This document shows positions 21,814 to 50,970 of a stretch of DNA of 64,000 bases, one piece after another; the stretch's first letter is position 1; each line of letters begins with the position of its first letter. The position numbers and the translations under genes are program-made. A model generated the notes under the pieces. It saw nothing but the letters and a program-made list of their open reading frames with translations. It was not told the DNA's origin and ran no database searches. Origin of the DNA: Eutreptiella sp. 'Long Island Sound 2002' (lineage: Eukaryota > Protista > Euglenida); assembly GCA_964036045.1 (NCBI GenBank), contig OZ038378.1, positions 194,246,001 through 194,310,000 on the forward strand, given 5' to 3'.

Positions 21814-24103
21814 AGAACCGAGGAGTCACCCCCGGGACTGTGCTGCACTGTGATGATACACAGTTAAAGCCATGAATCTTCCATCCTATGCTCCTGTATC
21901 CCATGGGGGTGCGTATCCCATGGGGGTGCCCTTAGCGCAGTGTGGGCGCAGTCTCTGAAGGGAACGTGGTGACAGACAATGTTCATCTTGTTCATCGGAA
22001 ACAGCAACGTCGGGTTTTAGGGGACGGGGCAAGAGACAACAGGCGGGAGCGGCGGGACGAGGGGCTCCCGAAGCTCCGCGGCAGGCACAGGGGGTCCCAC
22101 ATGACCCTCGGACCTGTGATCATTTTTCACAACGGGGATGAACAGGGGGCAGCCGTGCTCCCTGGTTGCATGGCCCATAGAGGACGGGGTGGGGGGATGA
22201 CCCCCCCTCCTCCCCCCCTTGGGTCGGGCAGAGCAGCAAGTGGCCCGCCCCTGGTCAGGGAGGGGAGGGCAGCTTACGAGCCCAGGGTCAGGGCCCTGAA
22301 GGGCAGCAGGAGCAGATACCTGACCCCCTGATTGCAGGTCCTTCCCTTGCGCCCGCGCTCAAGGGGTCCATGGGGAGGATTCCCCCTGGGGCCCAGCACG
22401 CACGCCACGGGCCAGCCCAACCACCAGCCCCCAGCAGCGGGGGGAGGGGAATGAAGCGACAAAGGGAGACCCCTCCCCCACGGGAGACCCGGCAAGCGCC
22501 CACGCTTGGCGCGCCCCGCGCAGCTGCACGGCCACGCGGGCACGGAGGTGACATAAACACCCCCCCCAGAGAGGCTCTGGCCTAGGCGAGGGCCGCATGG
22601 GGGGGAGAGGAGCCCTCTCTCCACCCACCGACCAGTGCGGGGGATCATCTGTGGGCACCCCTCCCTCTCTTTTTAGCACGCGGCCCGTAGACCCATGCAG
22701 GTCGTCCTATTTAATATGGCATTCCTTCCTCCCTTGCGCCGAGTACACCCTGGGTGAAGCTCCAGGAGGTCAGGCAGCGGGCCTAGCTCGCCCCAATCTG
22801 CGTACACACAGTGTGCAGGACCTACAATGTCTGGCCTGTTTCCACATCTTTTGGAATTATGGCATTCAGTGGTCCTTTTGTCCGGTTGTGTATGAAGGGT
22901 TTTCTGTGATTTGGGGCTGAGGATGATCCTTTGGGGTTGCCAAGACAACATCTGGTCACCCTCTCGTTCACCTCCGTCCCTAGTCTGGCCTAGTCTGGTG
23001 CAATCAAGCAACTCCCTTGTCGGAGCAGCGGGAGGTGCTATTTTTGGCAATTCCAGAAGGTCCAGTGAGCTGCGCTTGGCAGGGACCTTTCAGGCAAGCT
23101 GACGGGTTGATGGGTGTCCCGGTAACAGGGAAAATGCTCCAACAACAAAGGCCCTTGGCGGGTAGCCGCAACAGCTAGGCCACTTCCCATGCCGGTGCTC
23201 CTGTGCATGCTCATGGCTGCTCCCATGACCACAACCCAGGGAGCGAAATCTTGGCCTTGTGTGTGTCTGCAGGTTTCCTTGCTCGTTGTCCACCCTCCTT
23301 GCACACAGCCCTTCAATATAGAACGTTCGTGTCTGAGCATCCAGCTCCATATTCTGACAATATCCAAAGCAAACATAACTCCCACACTTAAGAACGTATG
23401 TATACTGTCTCGAGTACTTGGCATTGGACATTTTGAGTCAGTCGCCAAAACAAAAGAGGCATATGCCCCCCCCCCCCCCGGTGGTCCGAAATCCCAACCC
23501 CCAGCCCCCCCCAATCCCTTGAAGTTCTACCCCCGCCCTCCCCCCTTTTCCCAACATGGGCTTGTCCAAGCACGACGACCCCGTGTTTCCACGGTTTTGT
23601 GTTTTGTTTTTTGGAACCATGGTTGTTGCGGTTCCAATCCAATAGAGAATGTGGTTTGTAGCTTGGTGCAGGCTGCAAGAAGGGTCAATATGGGTGGCAA
23701 AGTGGTGGTGTAGCTGTAATTCCATGTCCTTTTGTGTTCTGGGGTGTATGCTGGCCTGTTGCTTTGTATTGTCATGTTTTGAGGGGTCAGGTTACTGTTT
23801 GCAACATGTGTTCTGTGTTACATGCCTCGCGGTACCACGGGTCTCTTCATTTCCATTGACATGCAAGCGTGCAGGCTCTTTGCAGGATGGTAATTCCACA
23901 ACGTGCGTCAGAGCTTCCTCCACCTGTCAGTCCATTGTCGGGATGGTTCTGTGGGGAGTGACTGAGCTCTTATATTATTTTTATTATTCTTATTGTTAGA
24001 AGTATAAGGGGGAACGTTAGCGCGCCGGACGCGCGCCAGGCATCTTTTTGGACCCGTGCCCCACCGGTGACCTTTTAGGGGGTGCGCTAAGGGGGCGCAC
24101 TTA

Positions 24104-24812
24104 GGACAATCTTTGAATCCACGCTTCGTTGCGTGCTGCATCATGGTGACCCCCGGCGTAGGTTTTGACTTCCGATTTTGTTCCCTTTGTTGGGGACCCC
24201 CGAGAATGCAGGGGTGATGTAGCATTTCCGCCCTCTTTTGGGCCCCAACCGTCCGGTGCTATTGACGAAACCGGGACAATCTTTGAATCCACGCTTTGTT
24301 GCGTGGTGCATCATGGTGACCCCCGGCGTAGGTTTTGAGTTTTGATTTTGTTCCCTTTGTTGGGGACCCCCGAGAATGCAGGGGTGATGTAGCATTTCCG
24401 CCCTCTTTTGGGCCCCAACCGTCCGGTGCTATTGAGGAAACCGGGACGATCTTTGAATCCACGCTTTGTTGCGTGGTGCATCATGGTGACCCCCGGCGTA
24501 GGTTTTGACTTCCGATTTTGTTCCCTTTGTTGGGGACCCCCGAGAATGCAAGGGTGATGTAGCATTTCCGCCCTCTTTTGGGCCCCAACCGTCCGGTGCT
24601 ATTGAGGAAACCGGGACAATCTTTGAATCCACGCTTTGTTGCGTGGTGCATCATGGTGACCCCCGGCGTAGCTTTTGAGTTTTGATTTTGTTCCCTTTGT
24701 TGGGGACCCCCGAGAATGCAGGGGTGATGTAGCATTTCCGCCCTCTTTTGGGCCCCAACCGTCCGGTACTATTGAGGAAACCGGGACAGTCTTTGAATCC
24801 ACGCTTTGTTGC
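24104..24812 (+). repeat. 170-bp tandem repeat (4 full units plus a partial) inside the transposon
   Basis: Unit starts at 24104, 24274, 24444, 24614 and 24784. Confidence 0.95.
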
Positions 24813-24844
24813 TTGTGTTGTTGTTTGTGTCCAATTCGCGCGTA

Positions 24845-25518
24845 CCATTGGCGGGATATGGAGTGCAGACCTGTGGAATCCTAAGTATGCGTCGCATGTT
24901 TACAAGGTCACTGTTGCCGTTGATATGTTGGGCAACATTGTATGGATTTGCCCCTTGGCCCCCGGGACATCAGCAGATGTTTTGATTTGGGATGGGTACG
25001 GACCTTCTCGTACCCGAGGGGATTTCTTTGATTTTGAAGTTGGGGGCCATGATGGCGCTTATAAAGGCCGGATTCATGTCATTGTGCCATTCATTGGAAG
25101 AAAGAATGGCACTTTGACAGCCCGCCAACAAGGTTACAATGATGTCCATGGGTGGTACAGGGCACGCATTGAGCAGCTGTTTGCTCGGTTGTGGCATTGG
25201 GGTTTGGTTAGGAACATCTGGCGTGGCGGCCCCAATGAGTTGCACCAGCCAGTCCGCATTTTGTTGCATTTCACTCCGTTTTGCATCCGGAGGCAAGTCC
25301 GTCACCCCCCCTACGGACCATGGGAGCATGTCCCGCCTCAGGTTTGGACTGACCAAAGCAACTCGGCCGCCACGCAAGATGAGGCAGAGGATGAGGCGGA
25401 AGTGTGTGTTTTGTGTTGCCAAAGGCGCTCCACCGTCGCAGTTTGTGATGAGTGTAAGGAGCAATATTGTAATGAATGTATTGACCCCCACACTTGTGGG
25501 ACCAATGTTGTTTGTTAA
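24845..25518 (+). pseudogene. Harbinger-type transposase, C-terminal part (second D and E present, first D deleted), with terminal Cys/His finger
   Basis: YKVTVAVDMLGNIVWI, PGTSAD, GHDGAY, RARIEQLF (D-39-E) and CVLCCQRRSTVAVCDECKEQYCNECIDPHTC. Confidence 0.85.
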
Positions 25519-26761
25519 GTGCAACACAAATGACAGTTGGAGTGGTTGAAGTCACAGATATTGCTTTATTTTGCAACGTGCTTTGTAGGGAAGGTGTGCA
25601 GTGCAATGTGGTCTACTTGGGGGGCTTCTCCATGGGAGGGTAAATCTGGGGCTGAAGTCGGGATAGTTAATACAAAAGTAGCGCGCCGGGCGCGCGCCGG
25701 GCAAACGTTCCCCCTAAGAATAATAATTACATGACATGCAGGCGTGCAGCTCTTTACGCCCTTCTGCTCTGCTCTGCTTAAGGAAGGAGCCTTTAGTCAT
25801 ACAGGGTGGAGCCAGTGTAACCACCATACTCACCTGACGCTGACGTCTGGTTAAGTGTAGATATGGTGATGACCCCATGGACTATTGCTCCTTAAGATGG
25901 TTTCCTTCCATCTGCTCTGCATATATGCTACTGCCAAGCCCGTTGCTGAGGCTGCTGCCATCCCTTGTGCTGAACCCTCAGTCAAGGTGCAACCAAACCT
26001 GTCGCCAGGGTTGCAGTGTGGCTGGAGAGCCCATTCTGATGGACCCTGTTGAGCACGTGCAACTCTTCAGCTCTTCAAAGTTGAGTTCTAGCACCAGCCA
26101 AAGCAAACAAAGCTCCCACACTTAAGAACGTATGTATACTATCTCGAGTTGGCATGAGACACTTTGAGTCAGCCCCCCCCCCCCCCCAAAACAAGCATGT
26201 GTACCCCCCCCCCCCCGGTGGGCCGAAATCCCAACCCCCACCCCCCGATCCCTTGAACTTAAACCCCCGCCCCCCCCCCCCTTTGTCCTAACACGGGCTT
26301 CCACACTTTCGTTTTTTGTTTTTTGGAACCATGGTTGTTGCGGTTCCAATCCAATAGAGAATGTGGTTTGTAGCTTGGTGCAGGCTGCAAGAAGGGTCAA
26401 TATGGGTGGCAAAGTGGTGGTGTAGCTGTAATTCCATGTCCTCTTGTGTTCTGGGGTGCATGCTGGCCTGTTGCTTTGTATTGTCATGTTTTGAGGCTCG
26501 GGTTGGCTTATGTTTGCAACATGTGTTCTGTGTTACATGCCTCGTGCTGACACGGGCTGGTCCAAACACGGCGACCCCATGTTTCCGCATTTTTGCCCAT
26601 TGAACTAGGACCCGACCTGTGTTAGGACAGTGGGTGGGGGTTACACTTGTGCATGGCCAGAATTGACTGGGTTATCATGAGGGCCCCCATGTGCCTTGAC
26701 CACAAATACCACCCAGCTCCCCCCTTGGGCCGAAATCCCAACCCCCACCCCCCAATCCCTT

Positions 26762-27200: not shown

Positions 27201-28757
27201 CCCCCAATCCCTTGAAGGTTTACCAACCTGTGTCACAATTGCAATTGCCCTGCATGCATGCCATGCATGCCTGCCTGTGTTTTGCAAAACGCTCAGACTT
27301 TACAATGTATCCTCCCATTCCGCCCCCCCCCCCAAAAAAAAGAAAGCTAACAGAATTGCCCCCCCCCTCCCCGCGCCCCAGCAATCATTCTGCCAGCTTG
27401 CCGGGGTTTGTTGTGGCCCTCAGTCCCCATGTACTGTTGAATTTAGGTTAGAGGTCTTGGCGGACACCAGCGCCAGACTGTACATACGCAGATGTTTGAC
27501 ATTGATCTGGATCATCAGTGGAACTGCCGAACATTGCTGTATATGCATACCAGGACGTGCATGTGTGGAGCGCTTTGTTGACCTGCATGCGGCCCCTGCC
27601 CCAGCCGGAATGGACAATCATGCGCCCCCACCCCAGCCCCCCAAACAATATTCCCCTTCCCCCGGCCCGGAGCGGACAACCATGGCCCGGCCATTTTGGA
27701 CCAAATCTTGGACCAAATCTTTTCTGCTCCAAGAGCACACTGGGAAGCCCACGGGCGTGGTGGTTCCTGCTGCATAACCTGGAGTCAGAGCCAGATCAGA
27801 CTAGCGCAAGTGATGTTCCAGCCCCCTCCCCCCCCACCATCGTTTTCAAAGCACCTCTTCGCCTTGACAACCCTAGAATGGTGCATTTCTGCAAACTGCA
27901 AATTGTCATTTACTGCGTTAAATGATTGGTTTCCAGTGCGCACCTTCTCTGGTCTGTAATCCATTCAATGAGCCAGAAACTGTTTCTTCTGTCATTCCTG
28001 GGGTGCATAGTTTCTCTTCATTTCCATTGACATGCAAGTGTGCAGGCTCTTTGCAGGATGGTAATTCCACAACGTGCGTCAGAGCTTCCTCCACCTGTCA
28101 GTCCATTGTCGGGATGGTTCTGTGGGGAGTGAGTGAGCTCTTATATTATTTTTATTATTCTTATTGTCAGAAGTATAAGAACAATAATTACATGACATGG
28201 AGGCGTGCAGCAGACCCAATGACCAGAGAGCACAATGGGCAATCAAACGCCCACGCACATGAAGGACATAACCCCACCAGGGACGCCAGGAAAGTTTTTC
28301 CCGGTTTTCTCATGACAGAAAATTTCCACATCAACAGATTTCATTCCTCGTTGCCCCAGTGGCGTGGCAGTTTCTGATACTGCATGAGCAGATGACAGAT
28401 TACAGGTGAGCTTCAAGTATACGTCCCGCCACCACGGGTGGTATGCGGCCCAGGTACCGCACGGGACAACATATGTTGTACTTACACTGTCATTTCTGAA
28501 CCGGCCCGTCTGGCTGAGCACTTACGAAGAACTTGTGAGTCTGAGCCAAAAAAAAATTACATTACATGGAGGCGTGCAGCCCTTTACGCCCCTGTGCTCT
28601 GCACACATGCTACTGCCAAGCCCGTTGCTGAGGCTGCTGCCATCCCTTGTGCTGAACCCTCAGTCAAGGTGCAACCAAACCTGCCGCCAGGGTCGCAGGC
28701 AAGTCTGCAGCCAAGCCTGTGGCTGGAGAATTTTGCTATTTCGACTTATGCAGTGTC

Positions 28758-28885
28758 CTTTGTAGGGAAGGTTTGCGGTCCACTCTTGGTGGACTTGGGG
28801 GCTCTTCTAGAGGAGGGTAAATCCGGGTTGAAAGTCAGGATAGTTTCTACAAAAGTAGCGCGCCGGGCAAACACCCCCCCCCCCC
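28758..28885 (+). mobile_element. Orphan transposon right end
   Basis: Identical to 10239-10366. Confidence 0.75.
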
Positions 28886-29236
28886 TTTAGTGCCTCAGGG
28901 CCGAAAGGGCCTTGAATATGGGCCAATCTGGGACCACAAATGGCTCCAAAACAGGTCAAAACCATGGTTTTTCAAAAATAATCCTAGTCCAGTTGTGGTC
29001 CCCAAACGGATGAACATAGCTCGTTTTGAGCCCCTTTTGAGCTGCTCTCATCCACTTTCCAGTGCGTACCTCATTTGTCGTTGAAGTCTCCTAGACGATG
29101 TTCCTTCCCCCACTAGCTCGGTCCCAATATTCAATCCTGGTATGGTTAGAGAGAGGGCAAGGGGAGGTAAGGGGAGCCTGTGATGAACCAACGCTTGGCC
29201 TTGGGGGCATGTACCAGGGAAGGCTCTCCCACCCTA

Positions 29237-30055
29237 GGGGGTGTTGCCTGAACCGTGCGCGCACCGTGCGCGCACCGTGCGCGCACCGTGCATCCTTTTG
29301 CGTATTCTGTGTCCACCAGATCCACAATGCCTGAATCTGAGCTGCCCTAGCTTGTCGCCGGACTGCCTGTGTACTACCACCGCTCCAACGGGGATAGGGT
29401 GTCGGCCACTGTCGTTGACCCTTCTCCAAGAGGTGGGAGTCGCGTCTCTATTTGGTACGAATTGGGTGGTGAAGAGGTCTTGTACGAGCATGCACCCGAG
29501 GAGCGGTTGGAGTTTGCAATTGTGACTGCTGAGAGCCCCGATTCCCCCCAACCTATGCACCATGAGGCGCCGATGGATGCTTTGCTGGAGCCCCAATTAC
29601 CTGAAGTGGAAGCTGAAGCCCCTAGAATTGATGATCATGAGCCAGAATGCTGTGGCGGATGAAATTGAAATTCCCGTAACCCAACCAGTGTTGTCGCTTG
29701 TGTTGTCGCCTGTACATGGTTTGTTACGGAGGTGCGTGCAAGGTGCAGAAATTGGGAGCCTGGAACCTGTGACAAGCATCAGATTCAAAAAAAAAAAATT
29801 CCCGGTACGCCAATAGGGGCTGCAGGGTGCAGAAAATAGGACCCTGGAACCTGTGACAAGCATCAGACTAAAAATTGAAGAATCCTGGTATGCCAGTATG
29901 GACTGCAAGGTGCAGAAATCAGGACCCTGGGTGTGTTTCTATGGGGGCCATTCAACGGGGTACAAGTTGGGCAACCATCCCAAAAACATTGAACCGTGCG
30001 CGCACCGTGCACGCACCGTGCGCGCACCGTGCGCGCACCGTGCGACAACGCCCCC
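29237..30055 (+). mobile_element. 819-bp non-autonomous GGGGG...CCCCC element with CTA at both ends but non-matching flanks (recombinant)
   Basis: GGGGGTGTTG / CAACGCCCCC termini; (ACCGTGCGCGC)n at both ends; CTA at 29234-29236 and 30056-30058; internal 82-84 bp tandem repeat at about 29737-29930. Confidence 0.8.
29327..29662 (+). pseudogene. Tudor/SH3-like beta-barrel ORF with early stop (TAG at 29348)
   Basis: VYYHRSNGDRVSATVV...FAIVTAESP aligns with VFYTRSNGMRVPATVV...FAIPSADSP of the ORF at 50101. Confidence 0.6.
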
Positions 30056-30134
30056 CTAGAGGAGGGTAAATCTGGGTTGAAAGTCAGGATAGTTTCTACA
30101 AAAGTAGCGCGCCGGGCAAACACCCCCCCCCCCC
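30056..30134 (+). mobile_element. Partial orphan right end (target of the 819-bp element)
   Basis: Matches 10287-10366 from CTAGAGG onward. Confidence 0.7.
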
Positions 30135-33100
30135 TTTGGTGCCTCAGCGGTTTAAGGACTGGGCCAATAGGGGGCCAGTCTTCACACAAGCCTGCGTGTT
30201 GAGTTGTGGGATTGGGTTGTGCATGCATGTGTGCTTTTATGCATATTGTTATCTGCTCCATTAGCTCGAGCTCCCCTGGTCTGTGATCAATTGGGACACG
30301 ACTGGCACTTTCAATGGGCCTGGAACTGTTCCTTCCAATATTCCTGAGTTGCATTATTCTTCTTCATTTGCATTTACATCTGAGTTGCTGTATTGAGTGA
30401 GCATGCGAATCAATGATTCAAATGTCGCATGTTCATTGGTGCTATTAGAGTTGTTGCCACATTGGGCTGTGGTTTTGGATTACCCTGTGCAAAGGGGTTT
30501 CATACTCATGTAAGTGCCTTTCCCTGAAGGGTGTGCCAAGAACACACATTGTAGGTGGGTTGGCATGGGCTCAAACCCACCTTCTCTGCTTCTTTTTATT
30601 ATCACAAGATCTGTCAACAGCTCCAGCAGCAGCAAGCTTGGCAGCCATCTGTGATGTATGCAACGCCCTCATTCCCACATACCCGGAACAGAACTCAGGA
30701 GAAAGTTTGTGGGACGCCCTCAAGGCGTGTCAGTTGCATCCCGCTGCATCCCCTGGTGACAGTGTACAAGTCTCAAGTACACGTCCCACCATCCTCTGAT
30801 GGCATGTGGGTCCTCCACACGGGATAATATATGTTGCATTTTAAGTGCCACACAGAGCCGGTCCGTCTGACCGAGCACTTATGAGGCACGGGTAAATCTG
30901 AGCAAAAAGAAAGTACATGGAACAGAACTCAACTCCTGTAGATTTGATTCACTCGCTCTTCTTTCAGAGGCTCATACCCTACCCCCTCCCTCGCGAGGAC
31001 ATTGTCTATGGCGGGGACATTCGGTCAATCAGAACCGACCATTGATCCCCTCGTGAGGACAGCACCCTTGTCAGAACAATATGGGGTGCTGTTTCTGCAA
31101 CTTTTGAAACCATTGGCTTTCGTGGCCCCATTTTCTGGTTGTCTATGAGGTCAAGTTTTTTTTCTTTGATTTGAAGCAAGGAATAGTATTGATTGCTAGG
31201 CTGCCACTTGTTGCCCATAGGTAGGATACGTCTTGCCCCATTCTGCTCCTTGCTTCAGTGCAGAGAATGTATAATGCTTGTTTTTGAGGCCAATTCAGGG
31301 TCCGATTCTGATTTTCGTTCAGGGACAGACACCAGGTGTGATGGAGCCAGCTATGATGAGGTTTCTGAATCAGGTTCTGTGTCCGATTCAAGTTCCTTGT
31401 CAAATGCATCTTCCATTTCTTTGAACAGCAGTGGTCAGGCCAGGTGTTCTGGAGGACAACGGAGGATGCTTTGCTTTGCTCTCATTGCTCATGTCCTAAC
31501 GGCGCACTCAAACAGCGCCCTTGGCAGATCAGGAGGGCCATTTATTGTCATTTGGTAACTCTTTCTTTGCATACAAATACTTATTGCTCTGGTGTTGTGC
31601 AATGCCACATTTGTTGCTCGTTCTTTGGGGCAAAGAGAGTGCCTTCTTTCATTTGTAATGACAAAATTGGAGGTGGCACCCAGGGGCACCACCGTTGGTT
31701 AGGGGGTCCATATAGAAGAAAAAAGTGGAATGTGACTTGCGTCCGAATTGACGTATAGTGGCAGCTACAGGCGAACCAAGTTTGGCCCACCACAATGCTA
31801 GCGGACCCAAAATGGTGCTCTCAGGACCAATATGCATTGGCCAATGATTCAGCGTATGCATGTGTCAGCGTATGCTTGCCTAATGCTTGCGGATATTTCG
31901 GTCCTGTAGCCACCAACTCATCCCGCAGCCATGCAATCACACTGAGATGCAAAACAATTGGTCTCAGAAATAACACCATTTGGCAGAGGGAGTGGTCATT
32001 GCACAAAGCAAACATTGCATATGCTAAAAAGCTAGCTGCAGCAATTTTACCATCGCATGCGGCGATGTTACAGCAATTCACGCACCTCCATTGCCACCTC
32101 GCGTCGCCGTATCATCGCGTGGAGGCGCCAAGGGACTCTTCCCCTTGACCACTACGACACACTGATGCAAACGTGCCACACCAGGAAGGAAAAGTTTTGG
32201 CTTCAATCCCTACGTACCTTGAGACATCGGTCAATGCAGGCACTCACACACGTTGCCACTCAACTACTAAGGGAAAACTGGTCAGCTGCGGAGGACCTGT
32301 TCCGAGCTGCCATTGCCATCGTACATCACCTCAAAAAGCGCTCCCGGCCCTATGACACTGCAAACCCCAACCCAAAACGGACCTGCACGCCCCGCACTGC
32401 CCCTCAACCCTCCGAGTCCGAGACAGTGTGGCCTAATCCCTGAAGACAGGGACCAACCCCTCTACAGACTTGACATCTGACACTGGATTCTTGCACTTGG
32501 CGGCGGTGTCGGCTGCGCGCCAGTTCCTATTTTTTCACCAACCCATGGCAGGTTGGCCCCCCTGTGGCGTCCTCCCCTTGTCTATTTTTTCCCCCACAGG
32601 TGTGGAATGCCACTCCCCAGCGCGCCGTAACCCTGCCTGTGTTCTACTTCCCACCTTCGCCCTCTTCTGTGTGTCACCGATCACTCCACAGCAGTGCGCT
32701 CTGCCCCAAGCGAATAGTGACCCTTTGTGCCTGATTGACCAATTGTGCCTGAATGTCATCCCCTCCCACTCTGATAGTGTATGACAAGCAACCTGCTGAT
32801 TCACCTCGGCCTTCAATCTTCACTCCGCTGTCTTTTTCAGCCTACAGTCATTGTGCCTCACGCACACTGGGAAGCCTACGGGCGTGGCAGTCTCCCACTG
32901 CATAACCTGGTTTCAGACTCAGCTCATCCTCACTACGTGTCAGATCCGCTACCACAGTCATTTGTGGGATCATTGTAGCACTGGACAGCTCTGAACCTTG
33001 ATTCCGAGGGGTCACCTCGAGGACTGTGAAGTAAGCAGGCTACGCCAGCTCATCTTGGTCTGAGCCAAAAAAAAAACATTGCATATGCTAAAAAGCTAGG

Positions 33101-34359: not shown

Positions 34360-35723
34360 GGGGGAACGTTAGCGCGCCGGGCGCGCGCCGGGCATCTTTT
34401 TGGACCCGTGCCCCACCGGTGACCTTTTAGGGGGTGCGCTAAGGGGGCGCACTTAGGACAATCTTTGAATCCACGCTTCGTTGCGTGCTGCATCATGGTG
34501 ACCCCCGGCGTAGGTTTTGACTTCCGATTTTGTTCCCTTTGTTGGGGACCCCCGAGAATGCAGGGGTGATGTAGCATTTCCGCCCTCTTTTGGGCCCCAA
34601 CCGTCCGGTGCTATTGAGTCATTGTTTCGATTTTTCTTCTGGATGAAACACACCCCACCGGCAGAGAGCGGTGCTTTCATGTCTCACGCAGAAGGTTCGG
34701 AGGTTGCCTGGCGGCAGAGTGTTGCCCGTGCTCGCGAATACCTTAACCATGTTGTTCAAGAGATTCGATGGGCCGACAGGTTGAATCCTTTCAACCATTG
34801 TCCCCATTTTCCATTCTTTATGATGCATTTCACAGACTCCATGCCCATCAGTTCCATTGGCGGGATATGGAGTGCAGACCTGTGGAATCCTAAGTATGCG
34901 TCGCATGTTTACAAGGTCACTGTTGCCGTTGATATGTTGGGCAACATTGTATGGATTTGCCCCTTGGCCCCCGGGACATCAGCAGATGTTTTGATTTGGG
35001 ATGGGTACGGACCTTCTCGTACCCGAGGGGATTTCTTTGATTTTGAAGTTGGGGGCCATAATGGCGCTTATAAAGGCCGGATTCATGTCATTGTGCCATT
35101 CATTGGAAGAAAGAATGGCACTTTGACAGCCCGCCAACAAGGTTACAATGATGTCCATGGGTGGTACAGGGCACGCATTGAGCAGCTGTTTGCTCGGTTG
35201 TGGCATTGGGGTTTGGTTAGGAACATCTGGCGTGGCGGCCCCAATGAGTTGCACCAGCCAGTCCGCATTTTGTTGCATTTCACTCCGTTTTGCATCCGGA
35301 GGCAAGTCCGTCACCCCCCCTACGGACCATGGGAGCATGTCCCGCCTCAGGTTTGGACTGACCAAAGCAACTCGGCCGCCACGCAAGATGAGGCAGAGGA
35401 TGAGGCGGAAGTGTGTGTTTTGTGTTGCCAAAGGCGCTCCACCGTCGCAGTTTGTGATGAGTGTAAGGAGCAATATTGTAATGAATGTATTGACCCCCAC
35501 ACTTGTGGGACCAATGTTGTTTGTTAAGTGCAACACAAATGACAGTTGGAGTGGTTGAAGTCACAGATATTGCTTTATTTTGCAACGTGCTTTGTAGGGA
35601 AGGTGTGCAGTGCAATGTGGTCTACTTGGGGGGCTTCTCCATGGGAGGGTAAATCTGGGGCTGAAGTCGGGATAGTTAATACAAAAGTAGCGCGCCGGGC
35701 GCGCGCCGGGCAAACATTCCCCC
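34360..35723 (+). mobile_element. PIF/Harbinger-type DNA transposon, internally deleted, 1364 bp, TSD AAT
   Basis: GGGGGAACGTT...AACATTCCCCC termini; AAT at 34357-34359 and 35724-35726; empty site GTCCAATGTATC at about 15917. Confidence 0.92.
34613..35527 (+). pseudogene. Harbinger-type transposase lacking its N-terminus; first D (HFTDS) and E present, second D mutated to N
   Basis: IESLFRFFFWMKH...HFTDSMP...GHNGAY...RARIEQLF. The frame stays open back to 34517 within the 170-bp unit. Confidence 0.85.
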
Positions 35724-35992
35724 AATGTATCATGGGTCACACCACTAGGCACTTTGGAAGTGCACTCCAACCCTTTGACCGTGCACCCAATGAGGAAATC
35801 ATTGCACTGCAGTTGACAACCACCTTTCCTGGGCATGTCTCCAATATAAACCTGCAAGATCTGCCCCACCAAACTCAAGCCCCAACCTGCCCAAGAGCGA
35901 AATGCACACTTGAACAAGTACAGGAGATGGTGGCCGCTTTCAGCATATCCCTGAGTCCGAACCCAGATACAAGCCATGTTTTTTACGTGTTC

Positions 35993-36072
35993 GGGGGAGC
36001 GTTAGTGCGCCAGGCCCACGCCAGGCATCTTTTTTGACCCGTGCCCCACCGGTGACCTTTTAGGGGGTGCGC
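35993..36072 (+). mobile_element. Orphan transposon left end upstream of eIF4E copy 2
   Basis: Identical to 16189-16268. Confidence 0.8.
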
Positions 36073-36276
36073 ACTAAGTGCAGTGCGCGCGCAGTGCAAC
36101 TATTTGGACGTCTAGCCATCCTAGAACCCCATACTTTGTGATACCTGCAAGATCTGCCCCACCAAACTCAAGCCCCAACCTGCTCAAGAGCCAAATGCAC
36201 ACTTGAACAAGTACAGGAGACAAGGAGACAGTGGCCGCTTTCAGCATATCCCTGAGGCAAACCCCAGATACAAGCA

Positions 36277-37614: not shown

Positions 37615-37650
37615 TGCAAATCAGCGATGGATTTAATTTTGGCGCTACTC

Positions 37651-38227: not shown

Positions 38228-38886
38228 AGTTAGATCCAACCCTGGTGCAAATGCGGCTGCAAGCCTGTGGGCATATATGGGCCTGTGGGCATGTGCTGCT
38301 TTGCATGAAGGGGGCAGGTTTGTGCCTGTGGCATCGCTTGGCTTGAGGTACTGTTACACAATGTATGCATATCCTCTGTTGATGGCAACCACATGTTTCT
38401 CATGCATTGCAGGATGGCAATCCTTCCTTTTTGTGCACAAATGGTGCGAGACCACCATTGCCCCTGCACCATGCAAGGGGGGCAGCCAGCATCCTATTTT
38501 GTGGATGTTCCATCTGCTTTTGGACCGTGGCCCTGCCCTGACTGCCAAGCAGAAACCCGCCAGTGACCCTGATCCTGTGGAACCTGAACCCTTAAGGGTT
38601 CCGTTACAACAGCACCCTCAGCCGCAGGCAGGACGCACAAGGGATGTCCCAACTGGGCACTACTTCCACACGGCATCCCCCAAGCAAAGGGCAGCCGGGA
38701 GGATGTGGCGCCGCATTCGTGACAAGGGGAGCGGTATGTCTGCATCAATGAGGTCTGGAACACGGATTATACCCCGACCAGTGGGTTGACTGCCAGAGTC
38801 ACTCTGTTTTACAATAAAGGGCCTCCCTTTTCCTGCACTGAGCTGTAGACCAATACCGGTATCTTCTTGCATACACCTATAGATTC

Positions 38887-40594: not shown

Positions 40595-40847
40595 TTCTTC
40601 TCACCCTCTACCTCTCCTCTGCTGCTGAATCATCTGAAAGGGACATTGCAATCCAATTGAAAACTGCTTCCTTCCCCTGCATCTGTGGGATCAGTATCCT
40701 GCTCAGCTTTGTGTGGTATGAAATGCACTTCAGCTTTCCCCACTGGGAAAGTGGACACTTGTGCAGTACTGCAGGCTTTGCATCAAGGAGTTGTCATGCT
40801 TTACCTTCCCTTCATCGGCATATGTTGGGGCGAGTCCGCGGGTGCTA

Positions 40848-41619: not shown

Positions 41620-43554
41620 AGAACCGAGGGGTCCCCCCCCCGGGCCATTATGGGTGGCAAAGTGGTGGTGTAGCTGTAATTCCATGTCCTCTTGTGTTCT
41701 GGGGTGCATGCTGGCCTGTTGCTTTGTATTGTCATGTTTTGAGGCTCGGGTTGGGTTATGTTTGCAACATGTGTTCTGTGTTACATGCCTCGTGCTGACA
41801 CGGGCTGGTCCAAACACGGCGACCCCATGTTTCTGCATTTTTGCCCATTGAACTAGGACCCGACCTGTGTTAGGACAGTGGGTGGGGGTTACACTTGTGC
41901 ATGGCCAGAATTGACTGGGTTATCATGAGGGCCCCCATGTGCCTTGACCACAAATACCACCCAGCTCCCCCCTTGGGCCGAAATCCCAACCCCCAGCCCC
42001 CAATCCCTTGAAGGTTTACCAACCTGTGTCACAATTGCAATTGCCCTGCATGCATGCCATGCATGCCTGCCTGTGTTTTGCAAAACGTTCAGACTTTACA
42101 ATGTATCCTCCCATTCCGCCCCCCCCCACCCAAAAATATTAAAGCTAACAGAATTGCCCCCCCCTCCCCACGCCCCAGCAATCATTCTGCCAGCTTGCCG
42201 GGGTTTGTTGTGGCCCTCAGTCCCCATGTACTGTTGAATTTAGGTTAGAGGTCTTGGCGGACACCAGCGCCAGACTGTACATACGCAGATGTTTGACATT
42301 GATCTGGATCATCAGTGGAACTGCCGAACATTGCTGTATATGCATACCAGGACGTGCATGTGTGGAGCGCTTTGTTGACCTGCATGCGGCCCCTGCCCCA
42401 GCCGGAATGGACAATCATGCGCCCCCACCCCAGCCCCCCAAACAATATTCCCCTTCCCCCGGCCCGGAGCGGACAACCATGGCCCGGCCATTTTGGACCA
42501 AATCTTGGACCAAATCTTTTCTGCTCCAAGAGCACACTGGGAAGCCCACGGGCGTGGTGGTTCCTGCTGCATAACCTGGAGTCAGAGCCAGATCAGACTA
42601 GCGCAAGTGATGTTCCAGCCCCCTCCCCCCCCACCATCGTTTTCAAAGCACCTCTTCACCTTGACAACCCTAGAATGGTGCATTTCTGCAAACTGCAAAT
42701 TGTCATTTACTGCGTTAAATGATTGGTTTCCAGTGTGCACCTTCTCTGGTCTGTAATCCATTCAATGAGCCAGAAACTGTTTCTTCTGTCATTCCTGGGG
42801 TGCATAGTTTCTCTTCATTTCCATTGACATGCAAGTGTGCAGGCTCTTTGCAGGATGGTAATTCCACAACGTGCGTCAGAGCTTCCTCCACCTGTCAGTC
42901 CATTGTCGGGATGGTTCTGTGGGGAGTGAGTGAGCTCTTATATTATTTTTATTATTCTTATTGTCAGAAGTATAAGAACAATAATTACATGACATGGAGG
43001 CGTGCAGCAGACCCAATGACCAGAGAGCACAATGGGCAATCAAACGCCCACGCACATGAAGGACATAACCCCACCAGGGACGCCAGGAAAGTTTTTCCCG
43101 GTTTTCTCATGACAGAAAATTTCCACATCAACAGATTTCATTCCTCGTTGCCCCAGTGGCGTGGCAGTTTCTGATACTGCATGAGCAGATGACAGATTAC
43201 AGGTGAGCTTCAAGTATACGTCCCGCCACCACGGGTGGTATGCGGCCCAGGTACCGCACGGGACAACATATGTTGTACTTACACTGTCATTTCTGAACCG
43301 GCCCGTCTGGCTGAGCACTTACGAAGAACTTGTGAGTCTGAGCCAAAAAAAAATTACATTACATGGAGGCGTGCAGCCCTTTACGCCCCTGTGCTCTGCA
43401 CACATGCTACTGCCAAGCCCGTTGCTGAGGCTGCTGCCATCCCTTGTGCTGAACCCTCAGTCAAGGTGCAACCAAACCTGCCGCCAGGGTCGCAGGCAAG
43501 TCTGCAGCCAAGCCTGTGGCTGGAGAATTTTGCTATTTCGACTTATGCAGTGTC

Positions 43555-43682
43555 CTTTGTAGGGAAGGTTTGCGGTCCACTCTTGGTGGACTTGGGGGCT
43601 CTTCTAGAGGAGGGTAAATCCGGGTTGAAAGTCAGGATAGTTTCTACAAAAGTAGCGCGCCGGGCAAACACCCCCCCCCCCC
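43555..43682 (+). mobile_element. Orphan transposon right end
   Basis: Identical to 10239-10366. Confidence 0.75.
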
Positions 43683-46600
43683 TTTGGTGCCTCAGCGGTT
43701 TAAGGACTGGTCCAATAGGGGGCCAGTCTTCACACAAGCCTGCGTGTTGAGTTGTGGGATTGGGTTGTGCATGCATGTGTGCTTTTATGCATATTGTTAT
43801 CTGCTCCATTAGCTCGAGCTCCCCTGGTCTGTGATCAATTGGGACACGACTGGCACTTTCGATGGGCCTGGAACTGTTCCTTCCAATATTCCTGAGTTGC
43901 ATTATTCTTCTTCATTTGCATTTACATCTGAGTTGCTGTATTGGGTGAGCATGCGAATCAATGATTCAAATGTCGCATGTTCATTGGTGCTATTAGAGTT
44001 GTTGCCACATTGGGCTGTGGTTTTGGATTACCCTGTGCAAAGGGGTTTCATACTCATGTAAGTGCCTTTCCCTGAAGGGTGTGCCAAGAACACACATTGT
44101 AGGTGGGTTGGCATGGGCTCAAACCCACCTTCTCTGCTTCTTTTTATTATCACAAGATCTGTCAACAGCTCCAGCAGCAGCAAGCTTGGCAGCCATCTGT
44201 GATGTATGCAACGCCCTCATTCCCACATACCCGGAACAGAACTCAGGAGGAAGTTTGTGGGACGCCCTCAAGGCGTGTCAGTTGCATCCCGCTGCATCCC
44301 CTGGTGACAGTGTACAAGTCTCAAGTACACGTCCCACCATCCTCTGACGGCATGTGGGTCCTCCACACGGGATAATATATGTTGCATTTTAAGTGCCACA
44401 CAGAGCCGGTCCGTCTGACCGAGCACTTATGAGGCACGGGTAAATCTGAGCAAAAAGAAAGTACATGGAACAGAACTCAACTCCTGTAGATTTGATTCAC
44501 TCGCTCTTCTTTCAGAGGCTCATACCCTACCCCCTCCCTCGCGAGGACATTGTCTATGGCGGGGACATTCGGTCAATCAGAACCGACCATTGATCCCCTC
44601 GTGAGGACAGCACCCTTGTCAGAACAATATGGGGTGCTGTTTCTGCAACTTTTGAAACCATTGGCTTTCGTGGCCCCATTTTCTGGTTGTTTATGAGGTC
44701 AAGTTTTTTTTCTTTGATTTGAAGCAAGGAATAGTATTGATTGCTAGGGTGCCACTTGTTGCCCATAGGTAGGATACGTCTTGCCCCATTCTGCTCCTTG
44801 CTTCAGTGCAGAGAATGTATAATGCTTGTTTTTGAGGCCAATTCAGGGTCCGATTCTGATTTTCGTTCAGGGACAGACACCAGGTGTGATGGAGCCAGCT
44901 ATGATGAGGTTTCTGAATCAGGTTCTGTGTCCGATTCAAGTTCCTTGTCAAATGCATCTTCCATTTCTTTGAACAGCAGTGGTCAGGCCAGGTGTTCTGG
45001 AGGACAACGGAGGATGCTTTGCTTTGCTCTCATTGCTCATGTCCTAACGGCGCACTCAAACAGCGCCCTTGGCAGATCAGGAGGGCCATTTATTGTCATT
45101 TGGTAACTCTTTCTTTGCATACAAATACTTATTGCTCTGGTGTTGTGCAATGCCACATTTGTTGCTCGTTCTTTGGGGCAAAGAGAGTGCCTTCTTTCAT
45201 TTGTAATGACAAAATTGGAGGTGGCACCCAGGGGCACCACTGTTGGTTAGGGGGTCCATATAGAAGAAAAAAGTGGAATGCGACTTGCGTCCGAATTGAC
45301 GTATAGTAGCAGCTACAGGCGAACCAAGTTTGGCCCACCACAATGCTAGCGGACCCAGAGCGGTACTCTCAGGACCAATATGCATTGGCCAATGATTCAG
45401 CGTATGCTTGTGTCAGCGTATGCTTGCCTAATGCTTGCGGATATTTCGGTCCTGTAGCCACCAACTCATCCCGCAGCCATGCAATCACACTGAGATGCAA
45501 AACAATTGGTCTCAGAGATAACACCATTTGGCAGAGGGAGTGGTGATTGCACAAAGCAAACATTACATATGCTAAAAAGCTAGGGCAACCGTTACCACCC
45601 CCCACCCCCCCAACTGTGAGCACCAAAAGCGCTGAAAATGATGGAAACACCATCTCGCGCTCCAATTTTAAGCTGTCAACAAGAAGAGGTGCGTTCAAGA
45701 AAGTCCAAGAGCAGATGTCAAGAAGTTGGGAAGCGAATGATGGGATGTTGCATGTAGTTTGGAACAACCATTGGAGCATGGATCCTATGCTCTTGGCCGT
45801 CCCAACGCGCATCTTGTGGTGTGCAAACCCCTGAACAACCACCGCAGCAGCTAGGACCAACGGATTTACTCTAGTAGAAGAAAAAAGGGAGGCCCGCGTG
45901 ACCTTACATGCTATACCCTGACAACACCATCCTTTCTGTCCCTTGTACCTTCGATAATCCCACCAACAGGGGCATGGGGAAGGTCTCTCTTCAAGGTGCC
46001 TGGCCGAAGGCAATAGAACTTCTACAACCCCAGAGATCTACACTACTTCTCTTACGGCACCTTTTTTCGGTGGTGGTGTGCACTGTAAGGAGTACAGCTT
46101 CATGCCTGGTCATGGCCGTACCCCCCCTCCCCCTTGCGCAAGCACGGCCTTGTCTAAGCACAGAGTGGTGAGAACAGTGATTTCCTGCCGGTGGGATACC
46201 GGGGGTGACGGCCATCGTCGGATTATGGCTAAGCATAGAGTGGGCGTTGAAACGCTGTTTTTAGGAAATTTTGGGACCACTGTTTTTGTCGTCCCAGATG
46301 TAAGATGGGGTTTAAAACCATTCTACCGCACATTACAACCCGTGATTCTTAGCCAGTCCCGATATTCCCCTTCCACAGCCTGTCACTATCTGCATCTTCT
46401 GGAAATGGGCGGTCATGTGTGTTTGCCATCCTGTGTGTCGCACGCGAGCATAGTGTTGTCTAAGCACCCGGTGGGCGTTGAACCGCTGTTTAGCCTGGTT
46501 TTTTGGGACCACGGCTGTGCTTGCGCAGGGGGCGGGGGTTACATTCAACTAGAACCACTATCCTACAAGACCTTTGGGTATTTGGCCTACAGTCTGTAAT

Positions 46601-47135
46601 CCTGCTCCTTCGCGGGGCAATACATAGTTGATGGCTTAGCCGACATCAGTGGTCAGGGCTGTTTGCCACTCTAGCACGCGGCCATGGTGCAGCCCTAGTG
46701 TAGCAAGGAATCCCCACTGTTCGGGACTGTATGATGCCAATGTACAGGTCAAGCGTCAGATGATTTTGAAAATTGCACCACCTTGGAAAGCAGTTTTACG
46801 CTGCAGGTCTGTGGAACTTTCTGCGTTGGTTGCAGCCATGCATTGTTGCACATTGGTGTGTTGTCCAATGTATCATGGGTCACACCACTAGGCACTTTGG
46901 AAGTGCACTCCAACCCTTTGACCGTGCACCCAATGAGGAAATCATTGCACTGCAGTTGACAACCACCTTTCCTGGGCATTTCTCCAATATAAACCTGCAA
47001 GATCTGCCCCACCAAACTCAAGCCCCAACCTGCCCAAGAGCGAAATGCACACTTGAACAAGTACAGGAGACAGTGGCCGCTTTCAGCATATCCCTGAGTC
47101 CAAACCCAGATACAAGCCATGTTTTTTACGTGTTC

Positions 47136-47215
47136 GGGGGAGCGTTAGTGCGCCAGGCCCACGCCAGGCATCTTTTTTGACCCGTGCCCCACCGGTGACC
47201 TTTTAGGGGGTGCGC
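47136..47215 (+). mobile_element. Orphan transposon left end upstream of eIF4E copy 3
   Basis: Identical to 16189-16268. Confidence 0.8.
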
Positions 47216-47419
47216 ACTAAGTGCAGTGCGCGCGCAGTGCAACTATTTGGACATCTAGCCATCCTAGAACCCCATACTTTGTGATACCTGCAAGATCTGC
47301 CCCACCAAACTCAAGCCCCAACCTGCTCAAGAGCCAAATGCACACTTGAACAAGTACAGGAGGCAAGGAGACAGTGGCCGCTTTCAGCATATCCCTGAGG
47401 CAAACCCCAGATACAAGCA

Positions 47420-48757
47420 ATGTTTTTTTCGTGTTGCATGCATTTGTGGGTTGAACGAAGTTGCTGCACAACATTTGCACATGTTGTCTCCAGTTCTCAT
47501 AAGAGCTTATTTCTTGACGCACCGATGTCGACTCGCTCAGCCACGCATTCCATGGCCAGTGACCTCATGTTGGCACAAGAGTACTGTTTCTGGAGAGACA
47601 ACTACGAGGTGGTGATTGTGAAGAATAGACGCCGAAAGTCGTCGCAGCGCACTGAGCTGGTGCAGTTGAATCGCGTCACCTCATGGGGCGCGTACCAAGC
47701 AAGCGTAATCATGCACATGGCCCAGACCCCACAGAACGGCAGTCTGCACATCTTTCGCAAGGGAATCGCCCCAGAGTACGAAGATCCTTTGAATCGGAAT
47801 GGCGGTCTCTTTAAGCTGACGTTTCAAGCCACAAGTTGTGCTGCGGATGCGTTCACAGTGCTGTGCGGTTCCTTCGTGCTGGGGCACCTCCCGAACCACG
47901 TGGCAGTGAATGGGGTAACATTTGCCAAAAAGGGGACGAGTTGTGGTCTGAAGGTGTGGGTTGGGAGCAGGGCCAAGCAGGTGGTGGCCCACGTTCAGGA
48001 GTGGTTCACGAAAGAATTGGATGGCTTCATCTCGTCCTGTCTGTTCTGCCCCATTGTGTCGCTGCTGACCTCCATTCAGAAGAAGCAAGCTGCACTGTGT
48101 GTGCCACCACAGCCCATCCAGCAACCACAAGGCCCAAACCCTAGAGACGCCATCGGGATCCTCAAGGTACCACCACCACCCCCAGTGATGATGCCCGCAG
48201 TCACCACCGCAGGCAACATGGGAATCATCCCTTGGGACTTGGTGCAACAGCCGGATGTCGCTGGCAGCCCAAGCCTGTTTCTTCTCAACGAAGCATCGTT
48301 CTCGAGTGATGGTAGCGACCCTGACACGGCTGCGTCTGGTAGATCCCTGGGATACAGCAGTCAGGCCTCCACTTCCGACGTCAATGACCGAGCACGCGAT
48401 TCGCAGCTGTTGTCGCTGTCCCGAGACGAGTGTATACTGGAGCAGGCCGTTGAAGAATGTGTACAGGATGTCCAACAAATGGAGGCATCGGGTCCTCAGG
48501 TGCCTGCCGCGCTTTCAGTCGTCCACAATGTGTTTGAGGATGATGCCATGAGGTGCCTGATGAGCAGGTCTCGGTACTCACAAGCCTGGGCTGTAGAAGC
48601 AGCGGACGCCGTGAGAAAGCGGCTGCAAGCCACCGCAGAGCGGTGCCGTGCATTTCCTCGCGATTTTATGGAAGTGCGGGTCGTGCAAACCTCTCCGCAA
48701 GCCCCATGCCGTACATGCTCTGACGATTCTGACGAATGTATGGGCAGATGGGGATAG
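47420..48757 (+). CDS. eIF4E: Atypical eIF4E-family protein, copy 3 (likely start 47525)
   Basis: 445-aa ORF, near-identical to copies 1 and 2. Confidence 0.88.
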   Translation: MFFSCCMHLWVERSCCTTFAHVVSSSHKSLFLDAPMSTRSATHSMASDLMLAQEYCFWRDNYEVVIVKNRRRKSSQRTELVQLNRVTSWGAYQASVIMHMAQTPQNGSLHIFRKGIAPEYEDPLNRNGGLFKLTFQATSCAADAFTVLCGSFVLGHLPNHVAVNGVTFAKKGTSCGLKVWVGSRAKQVVAHVQEWFTKELDGFISSCLFCPIVSLLTSIQKKQAALCVPPQPIQQPQGPNPRDAIGILKVPPPPPVMMPAVTTAGNMGIIPWDLVQQPDVAGSPSLFLLNEASFSSDGSDPDTAASGRSLGYSSQASTSDVNDRARDSQLLSLSRDECILEQAVEECVQDVQQMEASGPQVPAALSVVHNVFEDDAMRCLMSRSRYSQAWAVEAADAVRKRLQATAERCRAFPRDFMEVRVVQTSPQAPCRTCSDDSDECMGRWG

Positions 48758-48793
48758 TGCAAATCAGCGATGGATTTAATTTTGGCGCTACTC

Positions 48794-49361: not shown

Positions 49362-49831
49362 AGTTAGATCCAACCCTGGTGCAAATGCGGCTGCAAGCCT
49401 ATGGGCATATATGGGCCTGTGGGCATGTGCTGCTTTGCATGAAGGGGGCAGGTTTGTGCCTGTGGCATCGCTTGGCTTGAGGTACTGTTACACAATGTAT
49501 GCATATCCTCTGTTGATGGCAACCACATGTTTCTCATGCATTGCAGGATGGCAATCCTTCCTTTTTGTGCACAAATGGTGCGAGACCACCATTGCTCCTG
49601 CCCCTCCTGCACCATGCAAGGGGGGCAGCCGGTATCCTATTTTGTGGATGTTCCATCTGCTTTTGGACCGTGGCCCTGCCCTGACTGCCAAGCAGAAACC
49701 CGCCAGTGACCCTGATCCTGTGGAACCTGAACCCTTAAGGGTTCCGTTACAACAGCACCCTCAGCCGCAGGCAGGACGCACAAGGGATGTCCCAACTGGG
49801 CACTACTTCCACACGGCATCCCCCAAGCAAA

Positions 49832-50769
49832 GGGGGTACCGTGCGCTGTGCGCGCGCTGTGCGCGCTTTGCGAAAAGTAGGCCATTTTCCACCACCGGTA
49901 AGCAGTTTTTTGGGTGTAGGATTGCCGCAGGGTACTATTGCCGTTGTGTGTCCTTGTAGCATCAACCCTCCCCCTTCTTGCATGTATGTACCCTTGCAAA
50001 CGGGCACCCTGAGGCCGGTATATGGTGATACATTCTCAGGGTGTTTGCTGCGGGGCATCATCTTTTGCTCTCATTTCTCAGACCCTCTATTGCACTCACC
50101 ATGGACTTTAATGTTGCTGATAGGGTGTTCTACACTCGCTCCAATGGGATGCGAGTTCCTGCCACAGTGGTGGGGTTTGCGCCCTACGGCTTGCTCCACT
50201 CGGAGTATTTCCAAGACGCGGTGAAGGTGGTGAATCGGCAGTGCAAAGTTGAGTCCATCTCCTTTGCCATCCCGAGTGCCGACTCACCGCCCCCCTCCAC
50301 ACGCAGCCCTTCGCCCCCACCCGACAATCGGAGAAGGAGTCCATCAAAATCGGCAACTCCATCACCCCGTGCAAAGCCGCGCGCCCCCAAGACTACAAAA
50401 CGGTCTCGGGAGGGTGGTAAGCAGCTCGCTGCCACCATGAAGATCTTGAAGGGTGGGCTGAGTTCGTTAATTTCGGAAGATTGGAAGGAAGTTCTTGAAT
50501 GGCTGCTGAAGCGGAAGGAGGACACGGGCAAGATGAAGTGGGATGACGCCGCTTGGCATTTCTTACCACGATGGGGAATTGCTGACAGCAACGACCCACA
50601 GTGGGATGCCTGGCGGCGGTGGATAATTCTGAGAACACGACACATTTGAATTTCGGACTTTTGAATTGCTCATGCATGCTTATAGAGGTGGCAGGTTTTC
50701 AGGCTGGCTGTTACCGGGATAAACACCGTAATAACTGGCGCTGTGCGCGCGCTGTGCGAAAACGCCCCC
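49832..50769 (+). mobile_element. 938-bp non-autonomous GGGGG...CCCCC element, TSD AAA
   Basis: AAA at 49829-49831 and 50770-50772; empty site AAGCAAAGGGCAGCC in three other units (for example about 1278); (GCTGTGCGCGC)n at both ends. Confidence 0.9.
50101..50649 (+). CDS. 182-aa transposon accessory protein: Tudor/SH3-like N-domain, Pro/Ser/Arg linker, Trp-rich Myb/SANT-like C-domain
   Basis: Intact ATG-to-TGA ORF filling the element. C-terminus EDWKEVLEWLL...KWDDAAWHFLPRWG...QWDAWRRW. Harbinger elements are known to encode a Myb/SANT-like second protein. The fold assignments are inference. Confidence 0.65.
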   Translation: MDFNVADRVFYTRSNGMRVPATVVGFAPYGLLHSEYFQDAVKVVNRQCKVESISFAIPSADSPPPSTRSPSPPPDNRRRSPSKSATPSPRAKPRAPKTTKRSREGGKQLAATMKILKGGLSSLISEDWKEVLEWLLKRKEDTGKMKWDDAAWHFLPRWGIADSNDPQWDAWRRWIILRTRHI

Positions 50770-50970
50770 AAAGGGCAGCCGGGAGGATGTGGCACCGCAT
50801 TCGTGACAAGGGGAGCGGTATGTCTGCATCAATGAGGTCTGGAACACGGATTATACCCCGACCAGTGGGTTGACTGCCAGAGTCACTCTGTTTTACAATA
50901 AAGGGCCTCCCTTTTCCTGCACTGAGCTGTAGACCAATACCGGTATCTTCTTGCATACACCTATAGATTT

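Follow-up and report, generated by a model that had tools for sequence, protein, structure and literature searches.

How do transposons recognise ends whose repeats do not mirror each other? The question is raised by a window of 64,000 nucleotides from the euglenid Eutreptiella sp. 'Long Island Sound 2002' (contig OZ038378.1, G000:C1:194246001-194310000 of a 2.28-Gb eukaryotic assembly; GC about 52%). The window carries four transposon insertions, E1 to E4, that begin with GGGGG, end with CCCCC and bear tandem 11-bp GC-rich repeats next to both termini, and the repeats run in the same direction at both ends. This end-repeat observation was confirmed and holds genome-wide. Our overall reading, held with modest confidence, is that E1 to E4 are defective copies of cut-and-paste transposons, drawn from three sister subfamilies within a single PHIS clan (PIF/Harbinger-type, DDE_Tnp_4), that the arrays would be landing sites for the element's own protein and that their direction is probably immaterial. 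The clan appears to be undescribed in the searchable literature, and its target site and gene layout appear to differ from those of every described PHIS group.

As the window is composed of large paralogous blocks, an insertion in one block could be compared with the uninterrupted paralogue. The two flanks of each element were joined with a single copy of the flanking triplet and matched against the window. Uninterrupted sites with one triplet were recovered for E1, E2 and E4 (Table 1), which are therefore genuine insertions with 3-bp target-site duplications (TSDs); sites resembling the E1 empty site were also seen by eye near 28175 and 42975. The flanking triplets matched at all four insertions, in agreement with the original prediction, which had given them G5/C5 termini and variable TSDs (TAA, AAT, CTA and AAA). 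No empty site was found in the window for E3; elsewhere in its family, perfect identical 3-bp flanks were present in 23 of 23 copies on chromosome 1 for which exact left and right ends were paired by coordinates. In all, 38 genomic loci were fetched; for family 1, to which E1 and E2 belong, a perfect 3-bp TSD was found in 22 of the 26 complete copies from fetched loci, with 16 different triplets. Families 2 (E3) and 3 (E4) were studied through pattern searches printing the matched letters and through ENA contigs encoding homologous proteins.

Each end consists of a 9-15-bp tip starting with GGGGG, directly followed by one to four tandem 11-bp GC-rich units, and the tip is the only truly inverted part of the end. 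Analysis with TRF indicated that GC-rich period-11 arrays in the window are confined to the ends of these elements; the period is exactly 11 bp, which agrees with the helical-turn spacing proposed earlier. The family-1 left end reads GGGGGAACGTT-A-(GCGCGCCGGGC)n-ATC and the right end GTA-(GCGCGCCGGGC)n-AAACATTCCCCC, where n varies from 1 to 3 among copies, including active-looking ones. The unit is ACCGTGCGCGC in family 2 and GCTGTGCGCGC in family 3, and in the latter the sequence GCTGTGCGAAAA stands beside the arrays at both ends and is also directly repeated. Strict inversion of the tips extends over 11 bp in family 1 (10 of 11 matching) and over 8 bp in family 3, and in family 2 about 10 of 12 positions match. 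The terminal inverted repeats (TIRs) of 5-11 bp that had been predicted are short, as claimed, and the value of 5 bp is not a family feature: it is due to a 2-bp deletion specific to E4, since the family-3 left tip GGGGGCGT was present in 90 of 100 sampled left ends and the E4 form, GGGGGTACC, in 4 of 100.

All four copies in the window, and each complete copy of family 1 that was inspected, have direct units at their two ends. Where the left array of family 1 meets the interior, the direct GCGCGCCGGGC was present in 96 of the first 100 junctions in the genome and the other four were point variants; none was inverted. Full-length copies were checked for inverted subterminal repeats; family-1 copies and a 1990-bp family-3 copy (L040:3238-5227, TSD TGA) showed direct units, and the same direction at both ends was seen in a family-4 element (L042, unit GCGCGCAGTGC) and in its decayed relative L041. 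The 11-bp design recurs in families 4 to 6 and in an environmental contig, with one end seen for a further family in L042 (unit GCGGTGCGCAC) and for the environmental contig L039 (unit GCGCGCGCAGA). The claim of direct subterminal repeats is thus upheld in all families with both ends seen. The spacers between the GC cores (CGG, CCG-type, TGT and AGT) are specific to each family, yet within a family they are the same at both ends wherever both ends were seen, and the identity of the array unit tracks the subfamily, each carrying a different transposase. All three left units of copy L004 share one change, and the two ends of copy L032 differ from each other.

The pattern searches recovered 3158 exact right and 1504 exact left ends of family 1, 472 left and 391 right ends of family 2 and 937 left ends of family 3, and reversed-pattern controls for all end searches gave zero matches genome-wide. 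Family-2 copies were 99-100% identical along the whole element, and this near-identity indicates a very recent burst. One family-1 copy of 7890 bp (L038:1900-9790, on G000:C15) was split by a retroelement open reading frame (ORF) of 1629 aa.

Analysis of the units showed that each is built of a self-complementary (GC)3-4 core of 8-10 bp and 1-3 spacer bases. The family-1 array can be read as GGCGCGCGCC plus G and that of family 2 as GTGCGCGCAC plus C, each a 10-bp palindrome with one additional base; by eye, family 4 is likewise TGCGCGCGCA plus G, while family 3 and the environmental contig correspond to GCGCGCGC plus three bases. When an array is aligned with its own reverse complement, every 22 bp contain 2 mismatches in families 1 and 2 and 6 in family 3. 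If one gap is allowed, the two ends of family 2 form an imperfect inverted repeat that exceeds 50 bp. Because the rest of the unit is self-complementary, the polarity of an array rests on the 1-3 spacer bases per unit only. Counted by hand, the centre of the first complete core lies about 21.5-25.5 bp from the tip at either end of each of the three families; the left and right cores are offset by 1 bp in families 2 and 3 and by 4 bp in family 1. The 10-bp palindromes are not taken as strong evidence for binding by a dimer, given that an 8-bp (GC)4 core would acquire the extra symmetric pair by chance in one of four families.

Full-length family-1 copies measure 3.0-4.0 kb (L031-L034); their single gene is interrupted by one canonical GT-AG intron of 95 nt, after removal of which the frame is open for about 830 codons (a frame check only). 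The family-1 gene was searched as separate exons, and the uninterrupted family-3 ORF was searched too. The deduced protein comprises, in order, a Tudor-like barrel, a Ser/Pro-rich linker, a Trp-rich helical domain, a low-complexity linker, a helix-turn-helix-like region with the DDE core and a B-box-like finger; the upstream exon encodes the N-terminal barrel and the start of the Trp-rich domain. Full copies of family 3, of about 2 kb, have the same layout and encode a transposase 54% identical to that of family 1, and a family-4-type transposase (P0020) is 65% identical to it. No second ORF was found in the full copies of 3.0-4.0 kb or of 2.0 kb. The ORFs of E3 and E4 are homologous to the N-terminal part of the family-1 gene, the internally deleted P0069 joins a family-3 N-terminus to a P0019-type DDE core, and the L040 copy holds the family-3 N-terminus and the DDE core side by side. 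These shared homologous ORFs indicate that families 1 to 3 are sister subfamilies. The three interiors had been considered unrelated, and that view has to be abandoned, as the ORFs encode one protein type. A Harbinger system split across elements, with the transposase in family 1 and a helper in family 3, was rejected, since full copies of both carry both parts in one gene.

Assignment to the PHIS superfamily relies on the catalytic core. All eight proteins tested matched Pfam PF13359 (DDE_Tnp_4) at 28.6-48.9 bits against a cut-off of 24.8, and D171, D246 and E286 were invariant in an alignment of 10 diverse members; the IS5 family model NF033581 showed weak similarity. In the same alignment a C-terminal Cys/His cluster was conserved, with weak matches to B-box models and structures. 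The N-terminal 58 residues were predicted to fold as a five-stranded barrel (pLDDT about 90), the best structural matches of which were Tudor and PWWP domains (Foldseek target TM 0.75 to PHF20 Tudor 2; VIA Z 7-8), and whole-protein structure searches returned Tudor/PWWP barrels only. The model of the Trp-rich helical domain reached a pLDDT of 68, the domain had no Pfam hit and no Atlas neighbour, and a separate model of it gave no Foldseek match; a Myb/SANT identity for it was therefore dropped. At E<=1 no Myb/SANT/MADF domain was found with Pfam, nor were there Pfam hits for THAP or YqaJ.

A profile search of 1.84 billion representatives recovered 1483 relatives, 141 of them at E<1e-30. The best 150 of the 1483 were unnamed fragments of the same broad clade, so that the clan could not be placed relative to named groups in this way. 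The many relatives recovered from ENA, JGI and Logan assemblies by word-based and exhaustive searches included no named one. Two contigs of ENA sample ERZ27267618, L039 and L043, encode clan members 54-55% identical to family 1 (55% for L039), and L039 carries the 11-bp GCGCGCGCAGA array near its 3' end (3095-3150). The presence of array and clan transposase in a metagenome indicates that the design occurs in other organisms in nature. Three proteins from environmental contigs (P0158, P0164 and P0181) are distant relatives, at E of about 1e-55 to 1e-81 against the clan profile, and have different tails; by eye, one bears a PHD-like Cys/His cluster and another a chromo-like segment. Comparison of these sequences suggests that chromatin-reader modules may have been fused repeatedly in this transposase lineage.

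Target preference was tallied by hand from printed flanks of about 90 unique family-1 ends per side and 97-100 family-2 ends. In both families the first position of the TSD triplet was A or T in about 87% and the third was not C in about 95%; the preceding base (-4) was C in 55-56%, with T in 27% for family 1, and the following base (+4) was G in 58-62%. The target of the clan is a loose C|WNW|G and not the TWA of PIF/Harbinger elements, which the original prediction had cited as background: TWA (TAA or TTA) made up about 10% of triplets, with 9 cases among 95 unique left flanks of family 1. About 17% of triplets were TNA and about 15% ANT (the latter in family-1 left flanks), while CAG/CTG was absent from 22 paired family-1 TSDs and present in about 2 of 95 in the flank tally.

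The traits of the PHIS superfamily, namely a DDE_Tnp_4-type domain with a D, D, E triad, TIRs and a short, mostly 3-bp TSD, were all found in the clan. The superfamily is divided by target into PIF/Harbinger (TWA), ISL2EU (AT), Spy (none), Pangu (ANT), NuwaI (CWG) and NuwaII (C|TNA|G) (Han et al. 2015, PMC4482050), and, judged by target site and coding layout, the clan appears to fit none of these six groups. NuwaII is similar in its DDE_Tnp_4-type core, 3-bp TSD, GG-starting tips, and preference for C before and G after the TSD (PMC4482050); however, its TNA is strict, whereas the clan has a WNW-like triplet, and it carries two ORFs, for a transposase and a Myb/SANT protein, whereas the clan has a single fused gene, the product of which includes a Tudor-like barrel and a B-box-like finger. 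Canonical PIF/Harbinger elements (Harbinger3_DR, Ping/mPing) belong to the same superfamily as the clan and likewise have a 3-bp TSD, short TIRs that begin with G and plenty of short derivatives. They differ in their TWA target and in their two-gene layout, the clan having no separate Myb/MADF gene and no Myb/SANT hit, and the clan repeats are distinct in being tandem, exactly 11 bp long, GC-cored and direct between ends. The low ANT frequency and the absence of CWG from the paired family-1 TSDs separate the clan from Pangu and NuwaI, respectively. The 3-bp TSD and the lack of THAP and YqaJ hits set it apart from ISL2EU, which has a 2-bp AT target, a THAP transposase and a YqaJ ORF, and the single copy of the flanking triplet in empty sites distinguishes it from Spy, which makes no TSD. 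A literature search found no paper on euglenid Harbinger-type elements or on this clan. The proposal of an undescribed PHIS lineage is consistent with these results, as is the PHIS-type assignment itself; the polar end recognition attached to it is not borne out by a unit in which 8-10 of 11 bp are self-complementary.

In the mechanism that we favour, the phased units would let a protein encoded by the element land once in every helical turn, much as the Harbinger3_DR protein discussed below binds its subterminal motif, and the G5 tip would be the site read and cut by the catalytic core. The direction of the array probably need not matter for the assembly of a symmetric cutting complex, because the cores are dyad-symmetric and the N-terminal modules are tethered to the catalytic core through long low-complexity stretches rich in Ser/Pro and QPKP; each subfamily would owe its specificity to the spacer bases. 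Units are retained even in the shortest derivatives. The ends of En/Spm (CACTA) and Ac, with their subterminal arrays, and those of Mu, Tn7 and the P element carry multiple short protein-binding motifs beside short terminal repeats and are not mirror images; these belong to other superfamilies, and their motifs are not known to form phased tandem units of 11 bp built on a self-complementary core. Within the superfamily, the Myb-like protein of Harbinger3_DR, an element-encoded module, binds a 9-bp subterminal motif, as cited in PMC9710019, and a comparable recognition is proposed for the clan. Units do differ between subfamilies with different transposases, as the notion of family-specific binding codes had implied; that such codes are binding sites is a putative assignment.

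Several points weigh against this mechanism. The helical domain showed no Pfam Myb/SANT hit and no fold match and has a pLDDT of 68, and the core positions of family 1 are 4 bp out of register between the ends. In addition, wherever both ends of a family were seen, their spacers are identical, though other families have different ones, and changes spread within an array and not across ends; this suggests that the spacers may be read and that binding may be polar. Such a pattern is expected of selection on a fully read asymmetric site, and we therefore keep truly polar recognition as a serious rival, although the less probable one. Here a module would read the whole asymmetric 11-mer with its spacer and sit head-to-tail in the same absolute direction at both ends, which would be functionally different, as are the left and right ends of Mu, Tn7 and the P element. 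The 4-bp difference in register, the absence of inverted units from the 100 sampled family-1 left ends, the direct repetition of array-flanking bases such as GCTGTGCGAAAA and the lack of any sign of between-end conversion agree with it; however, just one of 11 bases carries polarity in families 1, 2 and 4, and copies of one family descend recently from one master, so that their uniformity says little about constraint. A further-reaching form of this idea, which we regard as rather unlikely, makes the direct orientation functional: a module reading the asymmetric 11-mer including the spacer would coat both ends head-to-tail, so that in a eukaryotic PHIS transposon it would be the direction of the protein array, as opposed to inverted sites, that tells the two ends apart. 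The spacer triplet would then be a simple and swappable specificity code that keeps co-resident subfamilies apart, and the fused Tudor-like reader would steer insertion.

It is improbable that the arrays are not transposase-binding sites at all and act through DNA structure or host factors (Z-DNA- or cruciform-prone GC aiding end opening, or CpG-rich promoter or anti-silencing modules) or are by-products of replication slippage: their cores are perfect alternating purine-pyrimidine tracts and unit number changes freely with clear slippage (e.g. L004), yet each family has its arrays directly adjoining the two tips, short non-autonomous copies with little else left still have them, and their spacers track the transposase subfamily, as expected for recognition sites. 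In 30 copies of family 1, transitions at CpG were about 2.5 times as frequent as other transitions at G/C, and CpG-type changes are seen in the decayed arrays of old copies, observations that also fit this explanation and that give a weak hint that the CpG-rich sites may be methylated. The methylation-sensitive sites of the original prediction find indirect and weak agreement in this enrichment; sensitivity itself was an overstatement.

The window copies are derivatives that arose by deletion (Table 1), those of families 2 and 3 keeping only the Tudor-like and helical part. Amplified N-terminal or partner-only derivatives are also known from the MADF-only Harbinger derivatives of Caenorhabditis inopinata, in which the two functions are, however, separate genes of a two-gene element (PMC13668399), whereas in the clan they are pieces of one gene after internal deletion. 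E2 has Asn in place of the second catalytic Asp of the DDE triad (GGHNGAYKG, where the family has GGHDGAYKG; window 35056-35064), and to judge from this change E2 could not encode an active enzyme, even setting its N-terminal deletion aside. E1 contains 4.2 tandem copies of a 170-bp unit, located upstream of the coding part within family-1 elements; the number of these repeats differs among genomic family-1 copies, and they could be a promoter or further binding sites.

Table 1. Elements of the clan, their parts, paralogous empty sites and related fragments in the window.
Feature	Position	Strand	Description
E1	24008..25714	+	Family 1, internally deleted, 1707 bp; TSD TAA at 24005-24007 and 25715-25717
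E1 left end	tip 24008-24019; units 24020-24041		Both units with CpG-type changes
E1 right end	units 25681-25702; tip 25703-25714		
E1 170-bp tandem repeats	24104-24812		
E1 ORF	~24846-25519		Truncated; DDE and finger
E1 paralogous empty site	7616..7695	+	Single TAA
E2	34360..35723	+	Family 1, deleted copy, 1364 bp; TSD AAT at 34357-34359 and 35724-35726
E2 left end	tip 34360-34371; units 34372-34393		
E2 right end	units 35690-35711; tip 35712-35723		
E2 ORF	34643-35527		294 aa; DDE core and B-box-like finger
E2 paralogous empty site	46825..46906	+	Single AAT
E2 paralogous empty site	15877-15959		Single AAT
E3	29237..30055	+	Family 2, 819 bp, member of the near-identical burst; CTA on both sides
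E3 left end	tip 29237-29251; units 29252-29291		Units ACCGTGCGCGC
E3 right end	units 29993-30043; tip 30044-30055		
E3 ORF	29369-29662		97 aa; Tudor-like
E3 internal 83-bp repeats	29737-29930		
Rearranged stretch around E3	28807..30147	+	92-bp duplication (28807-28898 and 30056-30147) enclosing 336 bp of foreign DNA (28899-29234) and E3
E4	49832..50769	+	Family 3, deletion derivative, 938 bp; TSD AAA
E4 left end	tip 49832-49840; units 49845-49866		Tip without 2 bp of the family tip; units GCTGTGCGCGC
E4 right end	units 50740-50758; tip 50759-50769		
E4 ORF	50101-50649		182 aa; Tudor-like barrel and Trp-rich helical domain
E4 paralogous empty site	38644..38725	+	Single AAA
E4 paralogous empty sites	1241-1321; 18837-18916		Single AAA
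Solo right end	28746..28885	+	Family-1-like, 80% identical; single GCGCGCCGGGC unit and long C run
Same solo right-end sequence	30061-30135; 43545-43683		
Old left-end fragment	35993..36110	+	Family-1-like, repeats decayed at CpG, then family-4-type unit GCAGTGCGCGCGCAGTGC
Paralogue of old left-end fragment	47138-47255		

E3 sits on a rearrangement junction of two unrelated paralogous blocks. Its right flank continues a block that is intact at 43604. On the left another block, of which copies lie at 10715 and 3404, runs to within two bases of the element, which places the left breakpoint within CTA. The junction may be the outcome of a transposase cut misrepaired at the left end, or neighbouring repeat units may have exchanged unequally. 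At least 12 C instead of 5 close the solo right ends of the family-1-like type (28868-28885, 30120-30135 and 43668-43683), which looks like an expansion of the terminal C run. The duplicated blocks also contain paralogous intronless copies of an eIF4E-like gene (window 36380-37615 and 47520-48755).

The host belongs to a protist lineage whose mobile DNA is almost undescribed, and with thousands of near-identical copies some of the elements may still be active or were so until very recently. The end signatures permit a clean annotation of a large share of the repeats of this genome. The clan broadens the PIF/Harbinger-type superfamily in that two genes are replaced by a single fused one, chromatin-reader and zinc-finger modules are added to it, and the target is relaxed. 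Its short tips and countable 11-bp units make a compact natural test case for the way in which a transposase tells its own ends from those of sister families, and the same case could show whether the direction of subterminal sites matters.

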